A DNA stretch of 64,000 nucleotides from Macrostomum hystrix (lineage: Eukaryota; Animalia; Platyhelminthes), in the NCBI GenBank assembly GCA_950097015.1, contig CATNEN010000002.1, forward strand, positions 5,642,001-5,706,000. The letters run 5' to 3'. A program made the position numbers and the translations under genes. Under the pieces are notes generated by a model. That model was not told where the DNA came from. It worked only from the letters and a program-made list of their open reading frames with translations, and ran no database searches. This document shows, in pieces, positions 4,773-21,160 of this stretch (position 1 is its first letter; the number at the start of each line of letters is the position of its first letter).

Positions 4773-7700
4773 CAAAACTGAACTGCTGAGATACTAAAAA
4801 TATTATCTTTAAATGAAAAAGCTTGCTACCTTTAAAATGAAATAATTTTTTCTTAAATAAAGAAATAAGTTTTCTGAACAAGCTTCAATTAAAGGCGTTA
4901 TGATCTCAAGTTTAATATATCACCAATTTGATTTCCTTTGTAGTGTTTAATAACCGACATGTAATACTGCTGTCTTAACAAAAGCTATGGACGATGTATG
5001 TATGTATAGCTCGTTCTGCTACAATAGAAAATAGAATAAACTGCGAGTAGTCGCATATTTTTCGACTATTTAACACACATGGTACACAATGTCTTATAGA
5101 TTCAATTGCCCCGTTGTGAATTCATAACATTAATTCTGTGTGCCGTCAAATGTTGCTTTAATATGAGCCGTATTTCTTTTTTTGCTTTCAGCTTCTAATA
5201 AAAAAACTATTTGTTGGATGCGTGTTGAAATTTCCTAAAAACCATTTGTCTGTTCTTAATTTTGAAAGGTACTTCCTCAGATTTTATAATTATCCCCTCA
5301 GCTTGATAATCATTCACACAGTTTGATAATTGTACCCTCAGTTTGACAATCATCCACTCAGCTTGATAATCATCCCCTCAGTTTGATAATTATCCTATCA
5401 AGTTTGATAATTATCCTATCAAGTTTGATAATTATCCTATCAAGTTTGATAATTATCCCTCAGTTTGATAATTATCACCTCAGTTTGATAATTATCCTAT
5501 CAGCTTGATAATCATCCCCTCAGTTTGATAATTATCCCCTCAGTTTGATAATTATCCCCTCAGTTTGATAATTATCCCCTCAGTTTGCTATAGATTGCTA
5601 CTAAAAAAATTGCTACCACGCCCACGATCGCTACTATGAGTAGGCTAATTCAGCAGAATGATGCGGCTTCACTCACCTCAGACAGGCGGGCCTCCTGCGC
5701 GGCTTTGATCTTGGCTAAATCCGTCGGCTTAAGTGCGGCTTTGCTCTTCCTCTTCTCAACCTGTTTGAGAAGCAAAGTAGTGCTTTAATCAATAAATTCA
5801 ATATTTCTCTTATTCGTATAGATGTCCCAAGTATCAAATAAAAATATCTAGCTAGTTGGTGCCTTCGATCGATAGGCTGTTATCAGTTGTGTCATGGAGT
5901 GAGGTGGTCGTTCAGATAGTGCCAAGGAGTGAGGTGGTCGTTCAAATAGTGTCAAGAAGTGGGGTGGCCGTTCAGATAGTGCCAAGGAGTGAGGTGGTCG
6001 TTCAGATAGTGTCAAGGAGTGGGGTGGTCGTTCAGATAGTGTCAAGGATGAGGTGGTCGTTCAGATAGTGTCAAGGAGTGAGGTGGTCGTTCAGATAGTG
6101 TCAAGGAGTGGGGTGGTCGTTCAGATAGTGTCAAGGATGAGGTGGTCGTTCAGATAGTGTCAAGGAGTGGGGTGGTCGTTCAGATAGTGTCAAGGATGAG
6201 GTGGTCGTTCAGATAGTGTCAAGGATGAGGTGGTCGTTCAGATAGTGTCAAGGAGTGGGGTGGTCGTTCAGATAGTGTCAAGGATGAGGTGGTCGTTCAG
6301 ATAGTGTCAAGGAGTGGGGTGGCCGTTCAGATAGTGTCAAGGATGAGGTGGTCGTTCAGATAGTGTCAAGGATGAGGTGGTCGTTCAGATAGTGTCAAGG
6401 ATGAGGTGGTCGTTCAGATAGTGTCAAGGAGTGGGGTGGCCGTTCAGATAGTGTCAAGGATGAGGTGGTCGTTCAGATAGTTGTCAAGGAGTCAAAAAAT
6501 CTAGCTAGTTGGTGCCTTCTATCGAAGAAAAGCAGTACAAAATATATAATCAAAGTGAAAAGTGATTTCAAATTGTCAATGGAAAACACAACAACGACAG
6601 GACATGCATAATGTTTAAAATAAAAAGTAGGTGTAAGATATGTGACTACTAGCATACAAGGAAGTGACTTGCAAATAGTTCTAATCCGACTAGACATAGG
6701 AGTAAAATATGATCTACTATTATTCAAAATCTGAATATTTGTCACAAACCTCAGCTTCAGAATTGGAAGTAGGAGCGACGTTTTCGTGCTCAACCTTATC
6801 GGTTGCTGATTGGTCAACGGTTGAATCCTCAGATTTGGGCTACTCAGATGGGGCGGATTGAGAATCAGATATTGACTTTTAGCAATACCTATAGGTGTAA
6901 AACACTTTGGATGAGTAATGGAGTGAGGTGGTCGTTTAGATAGTGCCATGGAGTGAGGTGGCCGCTCATCTGGTGTCAAGGAGTGAGGTGGTCGTTTAGA
7001 TAGTGTCATGGAGTGAGGTGGTCGTTCAGATAGTGCCAAGGAGTGAGGTGGTCGTTCAGATAGTGCCAAGGAGTGAGGTGGTCGTTCAGATAGTGCCAAG
7101 GAGTGAGGTGGTCGTTTAGATAGTGTCAAGGAGTGAGATGGTCGTTCAGATAGTGCCAAGGAGTGAGATAGTCGTTTAGATAGTGTCAAGGAGTGAGGTG
7201 GTCGTTTAGATAGTGCCAAGGAGTGAGGTGGTCGTTTAGATAGTGTCAAGGAGTGAGGTGGTCGTTTAGATAGTGCCAAGGAGTGAGGTGGTCGTTCAGA
7301 TAGTGTCAAGGAGTGAGATAGTCGTTCAGATAGTGCCAAGGAGTGAGGTGGTCGTTTAGATAGTGTCAAGGAGTGAGATGGTCGTTCAGATAGTGCCAAG
7401 GAGTGAGATAGTCGTTTAGATAGTGTCAAGGAGTGAGATAGTCGTTTAGATAGTGTCAAGGAGGGAGGTGGTCGTTTAGATAGTGTCAAGGAGTGAGGTG
7501 GTCGTTCATCTGGTGTCAAGGAGTGAGGTGGTCGTTCGGATAGTGTCAAGGAGTGAGGTGGTCGTTTAGATAGTGTCAAGGAGTGAGGTGGTTGTTCGGA
7601 TAGTGTCAAGGAGTGAGGTGGTCGTTTAGATAGTGTCAAGGAGTGAGGTGGTTGTTCGGATAGTGTCAAGGAGTGAGGTGGTCGTTCAGATAGTATCAAG

Positions 7701-11543: not shown

Positions 11544-13424
11544 GCTTGAAAATCAGGCAAGGACACTATTTGGGTGCCTGGTTAGATTTGGGTAGGGCTT
11601 TTGCTCAACAGATTCTCTCTCTTATAGACTGCCAGCTCTGAAAGGGTGGAGAGAACGAATTAGACATTTTTATTTTATTCAATTAGCATGAAAGAGAAAT
11701 CGCTATTAGATGGGCTTTTCTTATTTAATTTCCTTTATAAATTGGACTGGTTTGTAAGACCAGCAAGAAAATTGTTTCATTTTATTTGTCTTTAAACTAA
11801 TACTGGTAGTCTAATACACAGCAAAATTTATTTATTAAAGTAATTTTAAATTAGAGGAATTCTTAACGATCTAAATGTGCATTTAATGATTACTTTATAT
11901 AAATATAAATATATATGCAGTAAATTATCAGTAATCAATACAGAGGATGGAAGAAACTATTTTGCCGAAGTTTTCCCTAAATAATACAAGACAAACTGAA
12001 ATACATTTTTAGCGGATAATTATTGCGCTATTTTCTTGCTTCCTATGTTTAACTCAATACTGTACTTGTACTGTCAACTATAAAACGGATTGACTAAATC
12101 TAACACGGTTTTTGGAGTTTCTGTAAAAGACTATATTATAAGCAAATCCTCAAAAACCATCCACACAAGAAATCTTAAAAAACAAAAACATCGCAATTAA
12201 AGAAGAAAATTTAAGCTCTTGAACTGCTTATACCAGGTTTATTTCTAAGTATACTAAAAGTAAATTTTAAGCAATGCCTCAAGATAAAGCAAAAAATGTT
12301 TGTAATGAAATATGAGGTAGAATGATTGTTGATTATATATGTTTATAAATTGCTTCGTTTTCCCGATATAGATATGATAAAATACAAGGCTTTGCTACAC
12401 AGCTTGGTATCCATCAATTTTTTATTAAAACTGAACTAAGTTGTCAATTTGAAATAAATGTTGCTTGTTGAGCGTCAACATCAACCTATTGACTTAGCAG
12501 CAAAATGTGTCTAGATTTTACAGTTAATACATTTAAAAAAATTTTTAGTAAAAAAATTACTGTATATACACGAGTTAAAAGAAATTAATAAAATGCCTTT
12601 GTTTTAATAGAAAGTCTCACGAAATGAATGATGCGCACATTTTTAGTTTTTTAATAACATTTATTTTTTCCTTCGAGGCTCGTTTCTCGTTACTTATGCT
12701 CAATCGACCATACAAAGATTTTAATCGTAGAGTTATGCCCTAACATAGGTAACCCTCGAGTAATTTTAATTTGTCGTTTGCTAGATATGTTAAATTCTTA
12801 TGTTTACGTTTTTTATTTCATTGCTGATGTAGTTTATGGTTCTAGAATTCAGACATTCAGTCCGTATATCAACAATCTATAGGCTATAATTTTCGATAGT
12901 TTGACACTTAAATGTAATTTTAAATTTGTATATACGATAGTAAACAATTCTTATCTATAAGTGCGAAAATAGGTGCTTTCACATGTTATTTATTTTAATT
13001 AGTAAGAACTTGTTCTTTAATATTACTGTTGTTTTTATGCTTAGCGTATATACTCGTAGTACATTTAATATATATAATTCTGTCTTTATTACTCATTTAG
13101 ATAAATTCCAATTACTTTTATAATTTTATGTTTGCGCTGACAAAATCAATTTCGCATTTTTATAGCTGGCTTTTAGATGGATTTTTACAAGCTTTGGAAA
13201 ACAAAATACCTATTTTTTACTTATAAAACTTTTTTACTACTTTAGAAATCTAAGAATTGAATCCTGGCATTTTTACATTGAATCTTTGTATTTATTTCGA
13301 TCTTTTTTAAAAGCAATCTGTTCTGTTTTAAATGTAATAATTTCAGGTTTGACAAAATCAAACAAGCTGCTGTATTCATTGTCTCATAAAAGATCAACAA
13401 AACAAATCAAGCTAGCCAGCAGTC

Positions 13425-16400
13425 ATGGGTGACCTGTTCCGCAGTCAGGAGATGACCCTCTGCCAGCTGTTTCTGCAGGCGGAAGCGGCTTACGCCTGCG
13501 TGTCCGAGCTGGGCGAGCTCGGCCTGGTGCAGTTTCGCGACCTCAAGCCGGACACCAACGCCTTCCAGAGAAAATTTGTCAACGAAATTCGGCGCTGTGA
13601 TGAGATGGAGAGAAAACTGCGCTACCTGGAGAAGGAGATCCGCAAGGACGGCATCCCCATCCTTGACACCGGCGACAACCCGGAGGCTCCGAATCCGCGA
13701 GAGATGGTCGACCTGGAGGCCACCCTCGAGAAACTGGAAAACGAACTTCGCGAGGTCAACGCCTACGCCGAGTCGTTGAAGAAGAACTTCTTGGAGCTGA
13801 CGGAGCTGAAGCATATCCTGCGCAAGACGCAAACTTTCTTTGAGGAGGTGAGCAGCCAATGAGCGTACAATTGTCACAACCAGCGATTTTATAGCCATTG
13901 TTTCTATGGCTCTCACTATGCCTCACTAAGATTCGAACTTAAGACCTGCTGGCTTAAATAAAAATCTCCATCAACACTTGTTTACCTGTTATAATTAATA
14001 ATGAGAATATTAATATTAGTAATTGACCATTCCTGCCCCAATTGGGTCTGACGTGCTGCCGACAGCACAGCCGCAGCTATTGCAGCGGGGGACGCCAAAA
14101 CCACCCTCAAACTACCTTTATAAGTGTTAAGTGTTAAGTGTCTTGCTAAAGGACGCTGATTGTTTCTGTGGAGTCGGGAATCGAACCCCCGACCTTCAAG
14201 TCGCGAATCCGCCGCTCTAATCACTAGGCTAAACCCCCTATTATAAAAGATAGCTATAACAATTGCATCGATTGTAACAAAGGTGAGACACTTCAGTGAG
14301 AAGGAGTCGCGGTTTTAAACCGTATTACAATCTTGTAAAAATAAACGAACTCACCCTCACCCTGAAGGCCTTGCACGACCAGCATATGACGGAGGAGGCA
14401 GTCGGCCTCATGACCGAGGAAGGCATGATGGCCGGCGGCCAGGCTGCGGGCCTGAGGCTGCAGTGAGTGCCTGCGGATGCCGGCGTTGTCTAAATCTGTT
14501 GTCTATTAGCCAGAGATGTTGTACCTAGCCTGGTGTTTTGCACCGTCTGTCTAGTATTGATGCTATCATATTATGTGAATACGGCATAGCCTGCAAATGA
14601 GATAAACAGCTGATGCACTGAAAAGGACTCTGGGGTAATGTCTGATGTACTGTGTGGTAATTTCTAATGCAATTATGTATTGTAAGATAATGTCTTATGC
14701 ACTAATGTACTGTAGGGTAGTGTCTGATTTACTGAATGACTACGGGGTAATGCAGTGAAGGCAATGTGACGTACTGTAGGCTGAAGCATTTAGTTAAACA
14801 AAATTTATTATTTTCTTGGTATTTATTTGTTGTTGTAATTTCTTCAATTTATTATCCTTAAATACCGTTTATACATAATAATGCATATTCAAATTGTTGT
14901 CGTGTCTTGCTTAAACTTTCCTTCATTTTTTACCCACCCGTTGCGTAACTATCGGATGCAAAAGTACTTAAAAAAATGACAGCCAATCACAAACCGCGCA
15001 CAGGCTGAGGGTCTGTTACTCACGGAGGAGCAGGCCTGGGACCACATGGTCCACGGAGCCGCAGGCTCCCAGATGCTGCTATTCAGTGCGGCAGATTCTG
15101 ATGACACAGGGCTGGCAGATAATAACAACGCAGAAGGAGGCAGTGCGAAACTGTTTCTGCATTTTGAGTGAGGAAGATAAAAAAAATTTCTCATGGACTG
15201 GCCTGCGAAATGGAAGCATTAACCAGAGCTAACTCTCTGTTTGTTTAAGCTTGCCGTGATGGATAAATTCCTTTAAAAATGTATTATTATATTTTCTTAT
15301 CGGTTTATTTGCACTCTTAAAAATCTGAGCACTCGTGGTTTATCATGCATAAAATTTATCTGGTTTGCTAACAACCTGGTTGATCTTTCGTAATTACGTG
15401 AATCACATTAGCAACAATTGCTAGTCTTTTGAAGAAAAAACATTCTAAGGAGTCTAATTAAAACCCTGTTGACTAACAGCACTACGAGCGTACTTTAGAA
15501 TAGCTAGCCAAGCTATCAACATAGCAACGTTTACTAAGTGTACTAAGACTCCATAGCAACAACAGTAAAATAAATCCTCCAATGAAAAATCAGAAACTTT
15601 TATTAGAAAAATCGACACAAAATAAAGTTCAAAAGTGCAGAATGAAGGTACTTGTGGAATGTACTTTTGAAGTATGTACTTTTCGAATGTACTTTTGGAA
15701 TGTACCCACGCCCGCAGGTCCGTTGCCGGCGTCATTCTGCGCGAGCGCCTGCCGGCCTTCGAGCGCATGCTGTGGCGCGTCTGCCGCGGCAACGTCTTCC
15801 TCAAGCAGGCCGAGATTGACACGGCCCTTGAGGACCCGGGCACCGGCGACAAGGTGCTCAAATCTGTCTTCATCATCTTCTTCCAGGGCGAGCAGTTGAA
15901 GAGTCGAGTCAAGAAGATCTGCGAAGGCTTCCGCGCCACTCTCTATCCCTGCCCGGACAGCCAGGCTGAGCGGCGCGAGATGGCCATCTCCGTGATGACC
16001 CGCATCGAGGACCTCAACACCGTGCTCAACACCACCGTGGATCACCGCATGCGGGTCCTGATGGCTGCCGCCAAGAACCTTCGACTCTGGTTCATCAAGG
16101 TGGGCAAGATCAAGGCCATCTATCACACCTTGAATATGTTCAACGTGGAGGCCACAAACAAGTGCCTCATCGCTGAGGCCTGGTGTGCCGTTGACGATCT
16201 GGACAAGATCCACCTGGCCCTGCGGAGGGGCACAGAGAGGGCCGGGAGTTCGATTCCGCCTATTCTTAATAGAATGTCAACCAGGTTAGTTGTGGAACAC
16301 GCCACGGATAAGTTAATTTCAGCGTTTTAATAAGATGAGACATGGGAGAGATGAGACAGGGCAGAGATGAGACAGAAGAGAGATGAGACAGGGGAGGGTT

Positions 16401-19400
16401 GAGACACGGGAGAGATGAGACACGGGAGAGATGAGACACGGGAGAGATGAGACACGGGAGAGATGAGACACGGGAGAGATGAGACACGGGAGAGATGAGA
16501 CACGGGAGAGATGAGACACGGGAGAGATGAGACACGGGAGAGATGAGACAGGGGAGAGATGAGACAGCAGAGATGGGACTGGAGAGATGAGACTGTAGAG
16601 ATGAGACGGGGGAGAGATGAGACAGGGGAGAGATGAGACACGGGAGAGATGAGACACGGGAGAGATGAGACACGGGAGAGATGAGACACGGGAGAGATGA
16701 GACACGGGAGAGATGAGACACGGGAGAGATGAGACACGGGAGAGATGAGACACGGGAGAGATGAGACAGGGGAGAGATGAGACAGCAGAGATGGGACTGG
16801 AGAGATGAGACTGTAGAGATGAGACGGGGGAGAGATGAGACAGGGGAGAGATGAGGCATGAGATAGATGAGACAGGGGAGAGATGAGACAGGGCAGAGAT
16901 GAGACAGGGCAGAGATGAGACAGAAGAGAGATGAGACAGGGGAGGGTTGAGACACGGGAGAGATGAGACACGGGAGAGATGAGACACGGGAGAGATGAGA
17001 CACGGGAGAGATGAGACACGGGAGAGATGAGACACGGGAGAGATGAGACACGGGAGAGATGAGACAGGGGAGAGATGAGACAGCAGAGATGGGACTGGAG
17101 AGATGAGACTGTAGAGATGAGACGGGGGAGAGATGAGACAGGGGAGAGATGAGGCATGAGATAGATGAGACAGGGGAGAGATGAGACAGAAGAGAGATGA
17201 GACAAGAGAGATGAGACAGGGAAGGGTTGAGACACGGGAGAGATGAGACACGGGAGAGATGAGACACGGGAGAGATGAGACAGAGCAGAGATGAGACAGG
17301 GCAGAGATGAGACAGAAGAGAGATGAGACAGAAGAGAGATGAGACAGGGGAGGGTTGAGACACGGGAGAGATGAGACACGGGAGAGATGAGACACGGGAG
17401 AGATGAGACAGGGGAGAGATGAGACAGCAGAGATGAGACAGCAGAGATGAGACTGTAGAGATGAGACAGGGGAGAGATGGGACACGGGAGAGATGAGACA
17501 CGAGAGAGATGAGACACGGGAGAGATGAGACACGGGACAGATAAGACAGGGGAGAGATGAGACACTGGAGAGATGAAACACTGGAGAGATGAGACACGGC
17601 AGAGATGAGACAGGGGAGAAATGAGACACGGGAGAGATAAGACACGGGAGGGATGAGACAGGGGAGAGATGAGACAGCAGAGATGGGACTGGAGAGATGA
17701 GACTGTAGAGATGAGACAGGGGAGAGATGAGACAGGGGAGAGATGAGACATGAGATAGATGAGACAGGGGAGAGATGAGACAGGGGAGAGATGAGACAGG
17801 GGAGAGATGAGACAGGGGAGAGATGAGACACGGGAGAGATGAGACAGGGGAGAGATGAGACAGGGGAGCATTTAAGGCAGTCTAGGATCTGCATCGAGCT
17901 CAATCTTAGCCACATTTGTCGCCGACCCCGCAGGGAGATGCCGCCGACGTATTTCCGTGTGAACAAATTGACCTCTGGCTTCCAGAATATTATCGATGCC
18001 TACGGTGTGGCCTCCTATCGCGAGGCCAACCCGTCGCCATTCGCCATCATCACCTTTCCGTTTTTATTCGCCGTGATGTACGGCGACTTTGGGCACGGCA
18101 CGCTGATGTTCCTGTCGGCCCTGTGGATGGTGCTGCGTGAGAAGCAGCTGGCCTCAACTGCCAAGGCTTCAGAGATCTGGGCCACGTTCTTTAACGGCCG
18201 GTACATCATCCTGCTTATGGGCGCGTTTTCCATCTACACTGGACTTATTTACAACGACTGCTTCTCCAGGTGAGCAAAGCTTTTGCTTTTCTGGGATGTG
18301 GGATTTGGGATCTGGGATCTGAGATTTTGGATTTGGGATCTGGGATCTAAGATTTTGGATTTGGGATCTGGGATTTGGGATCTAAGATTTTGGATCTGGG
18401 ATCTGGGATTTGGGATCTGAGATTTTGGATTTGGGATCTGGGGTCTAAGATTTTGGATTTGGGATCTGGAATTTGGGATCTGCTATTTGGGATCTGCGAT
18501 TTGGGATATGCGATTTGGGATCTGCGATTTGGGATCTGCGATTTGGGATATGCGATTTGGGATCTGGGATTTGGGATCTGGGATTTGGGATTTGGGATCT
18601 GGGATTTGGGATTTGGGATCTGGGATTTGGGATCTGGGATTTGGGATCTGGGATTTGGGATCTGGGATTTGGGATCTGTGATTTTGGATCTGCGATTTGG
18701 GATCTGGGATTTGGGATCTGGGATTTGGGATCTGGGATTTTGGATCTGCGATTTTGGATCTGCGATTTGGGATCTGGGATTTGGGATCTGGGATTTGGGA
18801 TCTGGGATTTGGGATCTGGGATTTGGGATCTGGGATTTGGGATCTGGGATTTGGGATCTGGGATTTGGGATCTGGGATTTGGGATCTGGGATTTGGGATC
18901 TGGGATTTGGGATCTGGGATTTGGGATCTGGGATTTGGGATCTGGGATTTGGGATCTGGGATTTTTACTGTGGATCCGGCGTCCGTGCAGGTCCGTGAAC
19001 ATCTTCGGCTCCGGTTGGAGCGTCCGCGGCCAGTTCAACCAGACCCTGCTGCCTGACCAGCTGCGCCTGCAGATCCGCGGCATCGACACGCTCCAGCTGA
19101 ACCCGAACGATGCCCAGGCCAAAGCCTGGCGGGCCAATCCCTATCCGTTCGGCCTGGATCCCATCTGGCAGGTGTCGGCCAATAAGATCACCTTCACTAA
19201 CAGCATCAAGATGAAGGCCTCGGTAGTGCTGGGTGTGCTGCACATGCTGTTTGGCGTGTTCGTGAGCCTCACTAACCACCTGCACCGCAAGGATATGCTG
19301 TCTGTTGTTGGAGAATTCGTGCCCCAGGTCCTGTTCCTGCTTGGAATGTTTGGTTACCTGGTCATTCTCATCATCTTCAAGTGGGCCGTCTACTCTGGCC

Positions 19401-19856
19401 GTAACAGCAACTGCGCTCCCAACCTGCTCATTGGTGAGCACTGGGATTGCTGTTAGACTGGACTGCAAAGGGTTTTAGTCGACCCAAGAATGGTGTTAGA
19501 CAAGAGTGTTAGAATAGGGTAGACAGAAAAGCGAAGGTTACTTAGACATGGCTGAGAAGGGTGTTAGACATCGCTGAGAAGGGTGTTAAAACTAGAATGT
19601 TTTAAAGAGTATCAAACAAGACAGTATGTGAGCACTTTCGGCTAACAATATCCTGCCGCTCGCAGGACTCATCAACATGTTTCTGTTCCGGTACGACAAA
19701 GTCAGCAGCTCCTGCCCGCCAATCTACTCCGGCTATCAGGGAGTCCAGACCTTCCTGGTGCTGATCATTGTACCATGCGCGCCCTGGATGCTGCTGGTCA
19801 AGCCGCTCATTCTGCGACGCAGGCAGCAGATGCTGGCCAGAGGCGGCGTGATTAGC

Positions 19857-19887
<31 letters not shown>

Positions 19888-21160
19888 TGGAGGGCGGAGC
19901 TGACGGCGGCAACATTCAGACTGACGTTGGAGAGCAGAACCAGGACGGCCTGTACAACTCGCACGACGGCGGCAAAGCTGTGGATATGGGCGCCGGCTAT
20001 GGAGATCACGGCGGCGAGGAGGTGGGTTGCATGGAATCACGAATGTGTTAGATAAACTGTTAGATAGGATTTCCCACTTGCTATACAGAAATTAGCACCT
20101 GTTATACACCTGAGGGTTAAGATTTCACACCTGTTAGATATGAACTCGCACCTGTTAGATATGAACTCGCAACTGTTTGATAAGAACTCGCACCTGTTAG
20201 ATAGGAATTCACACCAGTTAGATAGGAACTCACACCTGTTAGATAGGAACTCACACCTGTTAGATAGGATTTCGCGCCTGTTAGATATGAACTCGCACCT
20301 ATTAGATAGGATTTCGCACCTGTTAGATATGAAGTCGCACCTGTTAGATAGGAATTCACACCAGTTAGATAGGAACTCACACCTGTTAGATAGGAAATCA
20401 CACCTGTTAGATAGGATTTCGCGCCTGTTAGATATGAACTCGCACCTATTAGATAGGATTTCGCACCTGTTAGATATGAAGTCGCACCTGTTAGATAGGA
20501 ACTCACACCTGTTAGATAGGAATTCACACCTGTTAGATAGGATTTCGCACCTGTTAGATATGAACTCGCACCTGTTAGATAGGATTTCGCACCTGTTAGA
20601 TATGAACTCGCACCTGTTAGATAGGAACTCACACCTGTTAGATAGGAACTCACACCTGTTAGATAGGAATTCACACCTGTTAGATAGGATTTCGCACCTG
20701 TTGATTGCACAAGTGTAAGGTATGAAAGTGAATGTTAAACACTATAGCAAAATTTTCACCAATCAATGATCTCGCATCGCAGCAGGTTGACATCGGAGAA
20801 GTGTTTGTACACCAGGCCATCCACACGATTGAGTACTGCTTGAGCTGTATTTCGAACACAGCCAGCTACCTGCGCCTCTGGGCCCTGTCTCTGGCCCACG
20901 CGCAGCTGTCTGAGGTCCTGTGGAGCATGGTCCTGTCCATCGGACTCAAGCGCGAAGGCTTCGAAGGCTCCATCGCTGTTGCTGTGGTGTTCGGCTTCTG
21001 GGCCCTTCTAACCGTGGTTGTGCTGCTGCTAATGGAGGGCCTGTCTGCTTTCCTGCATGCTCTGCGTCTGCACTGGGTCGAGTTCATGAACAAGTTCTAC
21101 AAGGGCGAGGGCTACAAGTTTGAGCCGTTCTCATTTGCCAGGGCCGAAGTTGAAGTTTGA
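13425..21160 (+). CDS. ATP6V0A1: V-type H+-ATPase V0 subunit a (a1/Vha100/unc-32 type)
   Basis: join(13425-13847,14368-14462,15718-16284,17934-18269,18991-19433,19666-20021,20786-21160) = 2595 nt, phases consistent. Hallmarks: [77 protein letters not shown] (essential Arg), [16 protein letters not shown]. Confidence 0.97.
14031..14231 (-). mobile_element. tRNA-derived SINE, family 1, copy B (first coding intron of the V-ATPase gene)
   Basis: Reverse strand reads TAGTGATTAGAGC...GGTTCGATTCCC...CCTTTAGCAAGACACTTAAC...GCAATAGCTGCGGCTGTGCTGTCGGCAGCACGTCAGACCCAATTGGGGCAGG. Confidence 0.8.
14368..14462 (+). CDS. ATP6V0A1: V-ATPase a exon 2a ([32 protein letters not shown])
   Basis: AG acceptor at 14366-67 (second in-frame AG at 14381-82), donor CA|GTGAGT, phase 0 to 2; restores LRL-x-SVAGVI, matching the conserved LRLGFVAGVI. 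Confidence 0.8.
15004..15167 (+). CDS. ATP6V0A1: V-ATPase a candidate alternative exon 2b ([16 protein letters not shown]...[11 protein letters not shown])
   Basis: CAG acceptor, GA|GTGAG donor, 164 nt, stop-free, same phases (0 to 2) as exon 2a; a GC-rich island in an AT-rich intron. Confidence 0.65.
16333..17873 (+). repeat. 16-bp purine-rich minisatellite (GAGATGAGACACGGGA)n with higher-order blocks
   Basis: Fills V-ATPase intron 16285-17933; the variant block GGGACTGGAGAGATGAGACTGTAG recurs about 4 times. Confidence 0.95.
18291..18962 (+). repeat. Heptamer minisatellite (GATTTGG/GATCTGG)n
   Basis: Fills V-ATPase intron 18270-18990. Confidence 0.95.
20110..20705 (+). repeat. 21-bp minisatellite (CACCTGTTAGATAGGAACTCA-like)
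   Basis: In V-ATPase intron 20022-20785. Confidence 0.95.

Follow-up and report, generated by a model that had tools for sequence, protein, structure and literature searches.

The V-ATPase subunit a gene of the flatworm Macrostomum hystrix very probably contains a real, frame-enforced pair of mutually exclusive exons, in which two unrelated exons, termed A and B, encode one and the same linker; exon A is ancestral, exon B has the appearance of a lineage-specific exon, and the choice between them is probably regulated. The pair lies in a stretch of 64,000 nucleotides, here called the window (GenBank assembly GCA_950097015.1, contig CATNEN010000002.1, positions 5,642,001 to 5,706,000), and coordinates given without a locus name are positions in the window, all on the forward strand. 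Subunit a decides the destination and the regulation of the V-ATPase, and most animals diversify it via gene paralogues. The flatworm would also diversify it by swapping a linker exon, in the slot that nematodes use for the tissue-specific isoforms of unc-32. This kind of switch is already known from unc-32, and the flatworm pair adds a new case.

Judged by its sequence, the locus encodes a V-ATPase subunit a of the a1 type. Exons were used as separate queries, one by one, in all searches. Exon 1 (13425–13847) runs from the ATG to ...TQTFFEE, ends in phase 0 at the donor gtgagc and matches positions 1–117 of the Pfam profile PF01496 (V_ATPase_I; E = 2e-34, 118.9 bits against a cut-off of 30.7). 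The common exon 3 (15718–16285) starts in phase 2, with one nucleotide followed by SVAGVIL, ends with ...NRMSTR before the donor gttagt and matches positions 161–287 of the same profile (E = 1e-42, 146.6 bits, cut-off 30.7). Profile positions 118–160 are missing between the two exons, which leaves room for a linker. Exon 1 aligns with residues 1–141 of the solved mammalian a1 chains, and these chains, not a2–a4, are the closest solved relatives, as shown by the a1 and a4 comparisons for exon 1 (E = 8e-67 versus 1e-46) and exon 3 (E = 5e-90 versus 4e-67). The final coding open reading frame (ORF; 20732–21160) carries the proton-path helix with the essential arginine, which corresponds to R740 of human a1 (PMC10352029). 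No match above 90% identity was found when the protein collection was searched with exon 1 and exon 3.

The alternative exons lie in the 1870-nt interval that separates exon 1 from exon 3. Exon A (14368–14462; 95 nt, gaag/G...CA/gtgagt) encodes a linker of 32 residues, five of them acidic, while exon B (15004–15167; 164 nt, acag/G...GA/gtgagg) encodes an acidic linker of 55 residues, with 10 acidic positions; the codon formed at the junction with exon 3 is CAG (Q) after exon A and GAG (E) after exon B. Both exons stand out as GC islands (0.6–0.7) within an intron of 0.2–0.45 GC, and GC at third codon positions (GC3) is 0.87 in exon A, 0.57 in exon B and 0.81–0.88 in the other exons. The preliminary description, drawn from the letters of the window, had proposed two stop-free, GC-rich islands with these coordinates and phases and with GTGAG donors, and all of this is found in the sequence. 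Its statement that neither exon appears in the ORF track holds at the default cut-off of 60 amino acids but fails when the listing is repeated with 30, where the exons fall inside ORFs at 14296–14466 and 15046–15171.

Mutual exclusion follows from the reading frame. Both exons are of length 3n+2, with phase 0 at their start and phase 2 at their end, so that either alone keeps the frame of exon 3 and exactly one must be included. When both are skipped, a stop is reached at codon 34 of exon 3; when A and B are joined in series, exon B is still open in the frame that follows A and the stop comes at about codon 60 of exon 3. The earlier claim that either exon restores the frame, and that both or neither shift it, is thus borne out. 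Both of these out-of-frame stops precede the donor of exon 3 (16285) by more than 350 nt, and by the general rule transcripts with both exons or with neither should be targets of nonsense-mediated decay (NMD). A mechanical scan of the 1870-nt interval returned 14 open 3n+2 candidates of the form AG..GT[AG], so the sequence pattern alone is not beyond chance. In the sequence, it is the GC islands alone that pick out A and B, and the RNA-like contigs decide the matter.

The evidence for splicing comes from assembled contigs rather than raw reads; these are unstranded, show presence and not absence, and drop rare forms. The type of run X4 is not on record, and it was taken as RNA from its exon and intron depth pattern and its spliced joints. 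Depth in X4 is 37–170 on exons versus 0–4 over most of the intron sequence; one contig covers exon 1 (13346–13848, depth 37), and exon 3 is also covered. Exon A is joined to its neighbours at 13847>14368 and 14462>15718 (depth 7.5), and exon B at 13847>15004 and 15167>15718 (depth 16.8), all four with GT..AG borders. The exon B joints are carried by a contig of 221 nt (record 27), which comprises roughly 26 nt from exon 1, exon B in full and roughly 29 nt from exon 3 with no mismatches, a shape typical of an alternative-exon bubble in a k = 31 assembly graph. Run X1, from a different study, also shows the joint 14462>15718, at depth 11.2 and with no mismatches over 243 nt. Exon B was not seen in runs X1–X3; the ratio of exon B to exon A is about 2:1 in X4, and X1 assembled A alone. 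The summed depth of A and B in X4 (24) is below that of the flanking exons (37–46).

These joints are the four that the preliminary description had predicted, and each exon is seen joined to both exon 1 and exon 3, in agreement with its central claim of two mutually exclusive linker exons. It had also named two outcomes that would speak against the pair, namely no use of exon B or a joint of A to B; exon B is used, and no joint 14462>15004 is listed. Neither that joint nor 13847>15718, in which both exons are skipped, is found among the contigs, which drop rare forms, and NMD would deplete both products.

Exon A can be traced in another flatworm. In Schistosoma curassoni an exon ending in ...TFFDE is followed, after about 1.8 kb, by a 95-nt exon (L003:12308–12402, ALHDPAMSEENVGLLGGEAMGAAGTAGGLRL) and then, after 1.7 kb, by an exon with ...AGIILRERL; the 95-nt exon is 61% identical to exon A and equal to it in length and phases. 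A-like linkers also occur in fragmentary relatives and transcripts from many animals, for example ...EEAVGLLAAEGGHGTASLRLG-FVAGVIL. Because of this orthologue and of the A-like linkers of relatives, exon A is, to judge from the sequences compared, the ancestral, canonical linker exon of flatworms. A further open 3n+2 stretch of 107 nt was noticed in S. curassoni (L003:12468–12574, bordered by the strong splice signals tttttag and gtgagt), separated from the exon A orthologue by 65 nt on its downstream side. This stretch is not similar to exon B, and is a possible further alternative linker exon of the fluke.

Exon B has a different record. It gave no Pfam match and no relative in a word-index search; HMMER against 1.84 billion representatives returned four repeat proteins, mostly of the kind expected from translated minisatellites, and no V-ATPase; and tblastn in the Schistosoma locus gave no match. 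Conservation of both exons in related species, which the preliminary description had offered as a check, is seen for exon A but not for exon B, for which no relative was detected in the Schistosoma locus. A common origin of A and B was rejected, since BLASTP produced no alignment at E <= 100 and a shuffle test gave p = 0.52; with lengths of 95 and 164 nt and no similarity, the pair falls outside the class of homologous tandem duplicates. As no relative is detected, there is no similarity to A and GC3 is lower, exon B looks lineage-specific, and would be younger or faster evolving than A.

It might be asked whether exon B does anything at all, that is, whether it is a young piece of intron that was exonised neutrally and is spliced with no distinct function, its exclusivity being purely frame-forced. 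Its GC3 (0.57 against 0.81–0.88), a second frame that is also open, its weak, purine-rich acceptor, the want of a homologue by word search, by HMMER and in the Schistosoma locus, and the fact that it was not seen in X1–X3 would all fit such an origin. We nevertheless regard this as unlikely, because B outnumbers A in X4 (depth 16.8 versus 7.5), keeps the frame, closes with LFLHF-E, a hydrophobic motif resembling a strand, at the place of LRL-Q in A, forms a GC island like the true exons and is not a repeat, being covered by a single contig at ordinary depth. The preferred reading is an exon B spliced in place of A, with a putative function of its own.

The closest known parallel is the exon 4 cluster of C. 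elegans unc-32, a gene with a second cluster (7a/7b). Exons 4a, 4b and 4c are 155, 107 and 122 nt long, all 3n+2 and non-homologous, and their exclusivity is partly dependent on NMD (PMC4165533, Table 1); exon 4b is neuron-specific via UNC-75 (PMC3585155). Related arrangements were found in other nematodes. Necator americanus has linker exons of 116 nt (L001:5986–6101, ending ...GPLFHNF-G) and 86 nt (7029–7114, ending ...APLKIQL-R), and Diploscapter has a 107-nt exon of the ...GPLFHNF-G type (L002:1109–1215); all of them run from phase 0 to phase 2 and stand before a shared exon, which opens with a single nucleotide and then FVAGVI. Fragments from Caenorhabditis and Plectus have ...TFFEE or ...FFDE and then a linker ending ...AAMLRLG or ...MFANFG. 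In genomic read-through fragments of Drosophila, Schistosoma and Necator, the likeness to the family breaks off immediately behind FF[DE]E, where a V codon follows, in keeping with a gt donor. Both introns that bound the linker are thus common to nematodes and flatworms, and the upstream one, from the read-through fragments, also to insects.

The flatworm pair and unc-32 exon 4 belong to the same family and occupy the same slot, between a phase-0 intron after ...TFFEE and a phase-2 intron one base ahead of [F/S]VAGVI; in both, all exons are 3n+2, unequal in length and mutually non-homologous, and the frame polices the outcome. The preliminary description had named unc-32 as a parallel, correctly, and the likeness is closer than it had claimed, since the nematode exons lie at the same intron positions with the same phases. 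The systems differ in that the flatworm has two exons and C. elegans three, in that the flatworm exons are without detectable sequence similarity to the nematode exons, and in that neuron-specific use and dependence on UNC-75 have been shown for exon 4b of C. elegans only. That A or B is orthologous to the nematode exons was rejected, as shuffle tests were not significant.

A deeper ancestry would hold that an A-type exon (..LRL-G/Q) and a B-type exon (..[LM][FL]x[NH]F-G/E) are both ancient, and that the flatworm pair is orthologous to two of the three unc-32 exon 4 variants, which would make the mutually exclusive cluster as old as the bilaterians instead of an invention made repeatedly. Such an origin would account for the shared intron positions, phases and 3n+2 class (PMC4165533 for unc-32) and for the resemblance of the end of exon B, LFLHF-E, to one nematode type (LFHNF-G, MFANF-G or MLNNF-G). 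We consider it decidedly improbable, however, because shuffle tests of exon B against nematode exons gave p values of 0.39–0.95, tblastn found no B-like exon in Schistosoma, and the common end motif is just 4–6 residues long and could reflect a shared constraint on a strand. A related conjecture, with a similarly slim chance of being right, is that two ancient introns, in phase 0 after FF[DE]E and in phase 2 one base ahead of [FS]VAGVI, form a bilaterian-wide, frame-locked 3n+2 slot, and that exon B and the nematode ...F-x-[NH]-F-G exon share one ancestor. Were the slot so locked, any second 3n+2 exon born in it would automatically be mutually exclusive; were the ancestor shared, switching of linker isoforms would date to the protostome ancestor or earlier. 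The preferred reading remains an ancestral exon A accompanied by an exon B that looks lineage-specific.

Clusters of this kind have consequences for annotation. In Necator (L001:6001–10815) the model NECAME_02916 (P0082) strings the two alternative linker exons serially, with intron-derived filler between them, and the N-terminal exon is given as a separate model, NECAME_02918; the structure of NECAME_02916 is an annotation artefact of a mutually exclusive cluster. Among long ORFs neither flatworm exon is visible, and alternative exons can be chained together by automated models, as in Necator.

Contigs that are 86–89% identical to exon 3 map at 15884–16270 in X1, X3 and X4, and their depth exceeds that of the window's own allele. 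The mismatches lie at distances divisible by three, so at third positions, which speaks for an expressed paralogue or homeologue. That the spliced joints stem from processed DNA copies, assembly chimeras or a mapped paralogue and not from mRNA is scarcely credible, even though the X4 run type is unrecorded, such paralogue-like contigs map on exon 3 and one contig per run stands behind each joint, given that the exon B contig and the X1 contig joining A to exon 3 have no mismatches, that each of the four joints coincides precisely with predicted GT..AG sites, that near-empty introns beside exons at depth 37–170 are unlike a DNA run, and that the joint of A to exon 3 is present in two studies.

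Exon choice is probably regulated, as the ratio of A to B differs between X4 and X1, both runs of unrecorded tissue. The two may serve as neuronal and general isoforms, as the preliminary description suggested. The intron between A and B is 541 nt long and all splice sites are GT-AG, so neither steric hindrance nor incompatibility of U2 and U12 sites applies. The acceptor of exon B is weak and purine-rich, with a pyrimidine fraction of 0.40. The 1870-nt interval has six GTTGT motifs, all of which fall in the A-B intron, and three of these are no more than 60 nt from the donor of exon A; a UG-rich patch with three GUUGU (14485–14522), just downstream of that donor, is a candidate CELF-type site. 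In unc-32, UNC-75/CELF binds a UUGUUGUGUUGU stretch in intron 7a (PMC3585155). By analogy with unc-32, the GUUGU patch and the weak acceptor of B suggest that trans-acting factors of the CELF kind may be at work. For RBFOX sites, no UGCAUG was found in the 1870-nt interval, and a single GCAUG lies inside exon A. Pairing of docking and selector RNA sequences between the introns was rejected, the short AU-rich inverted repeats (74–92% over 11–23 nt) being no better than expected.

Two tandem arrays were noted in the same interval. A unit of 13–15 nt (GAATGTACTTTTG) is repeated four times directly upstream of the exon 3 acceptor (15648–15710), and a unit of about 30 nt with a TGTACTGT core has four repeats in the A-B intron (14622–14780); a role of these repeats in splice-site choice is possible. 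Intron 1 contains a tRNA-derived, SINE-like element (14010–14246), whose minus strand carries a B-box-like GGTTCGATTCCC. All four runs cover it at extreme depth, which reaches about 4400 in X4, and in many variant contigs; ARAGORN called no tRNA at this element.

We propose that the exon pair acts as follows. The linker would join the long N-terminal helix, which ends in FFEE, to the first strand (SVAGVI) of the distal cytosolic lobe, and would be encoded by one of the two unrelated exons: A, with 32 residues and ancestral, or B, with 55 residues and more acidic. Exactly one exon would be included, and transcripts with both or neither would meet an early stop in exon 3 and be removed by NMD. 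A factor of the CELF kind acting on the GUUGU-rich patch, together with the weak acceptor of B, would steer the choice. The A and B proteins would then differ solely in the linker, which is probably flexible. In V-ATPases this distal lobe is in contact with the peripheral stalk and with subunit C, and its position changes as V1 separates from Vo. A swap of the linker would most likely affect the targeting of isoforms, the choice of partner or compartment, or V1-Vo assembly, and not proton transport.

The same linker varies in vertebrates. Rat a1 reportedly has splice variants with neuronal sorting, as described by Poea-Guyon et al. in 2006. In vertebrate ATP6V0A1 a small cassette is inserted in frame, whereas whole 3n+2 exons are not exchanged, and the vertebrate gene differs further from that of the flatworm in being split into many more exons; the likeness of its N-terminal variants to the flatworm pair is that the variation falls in the same linker. 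Most of the solved mammalian a1 chains have VAGVI at residue 171, but 9bra_a has it at 178, a linker difference of seven residues with residues 1–141 unchanged. PMC2835735 and PMC7212675 cite the 2006 study for alternatively spliced a1 with neuronal sorting, and the seven-residue difference agrees with the splice variants cited there. The linker would thus be a recurrent site of isoform control, in the flatworm, in nematodes and in the mammalian a1 chains with their seven-residue difference, and Macrostomum offers a tractable, regenerating model for the study of its function. With respect to exclusive pairs in general, the flatworm exons resemble the non-homologous, NMD-policed pairs (PMC4165533, PMC3585155), in which both exons are non-3n and either alone keeps the frame, and differ from most described mutually exclusive pairs, which are homologous tandem duplicates of equal length, in measuring 95 and 164 nt.

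Elsewhere in the gene, the exon at 19677–20051, which encodes the cytosolic loop that precedes the final membrane helices, contains ten consecutive glutamines and an insert, acidic and rich in glycine, that is not seen in the mammalian a1 chains. The introns at 16330–17900, 18280–18990 and 20117–20718 are filled by long, strand-skewed minisatellites, which yield spurious ORFs of 200–570 amino acids in several frames. At the 5' end, the match of the X4 contig that covers exon 1 starts at 13346, right after a ttttaaatgtaataatttcag acceptor, and the contig has 24 extra 5' letters found nowhere on the stretch, a likely sign of a trans-spliced leader or of a non-coding exon lying upstream.
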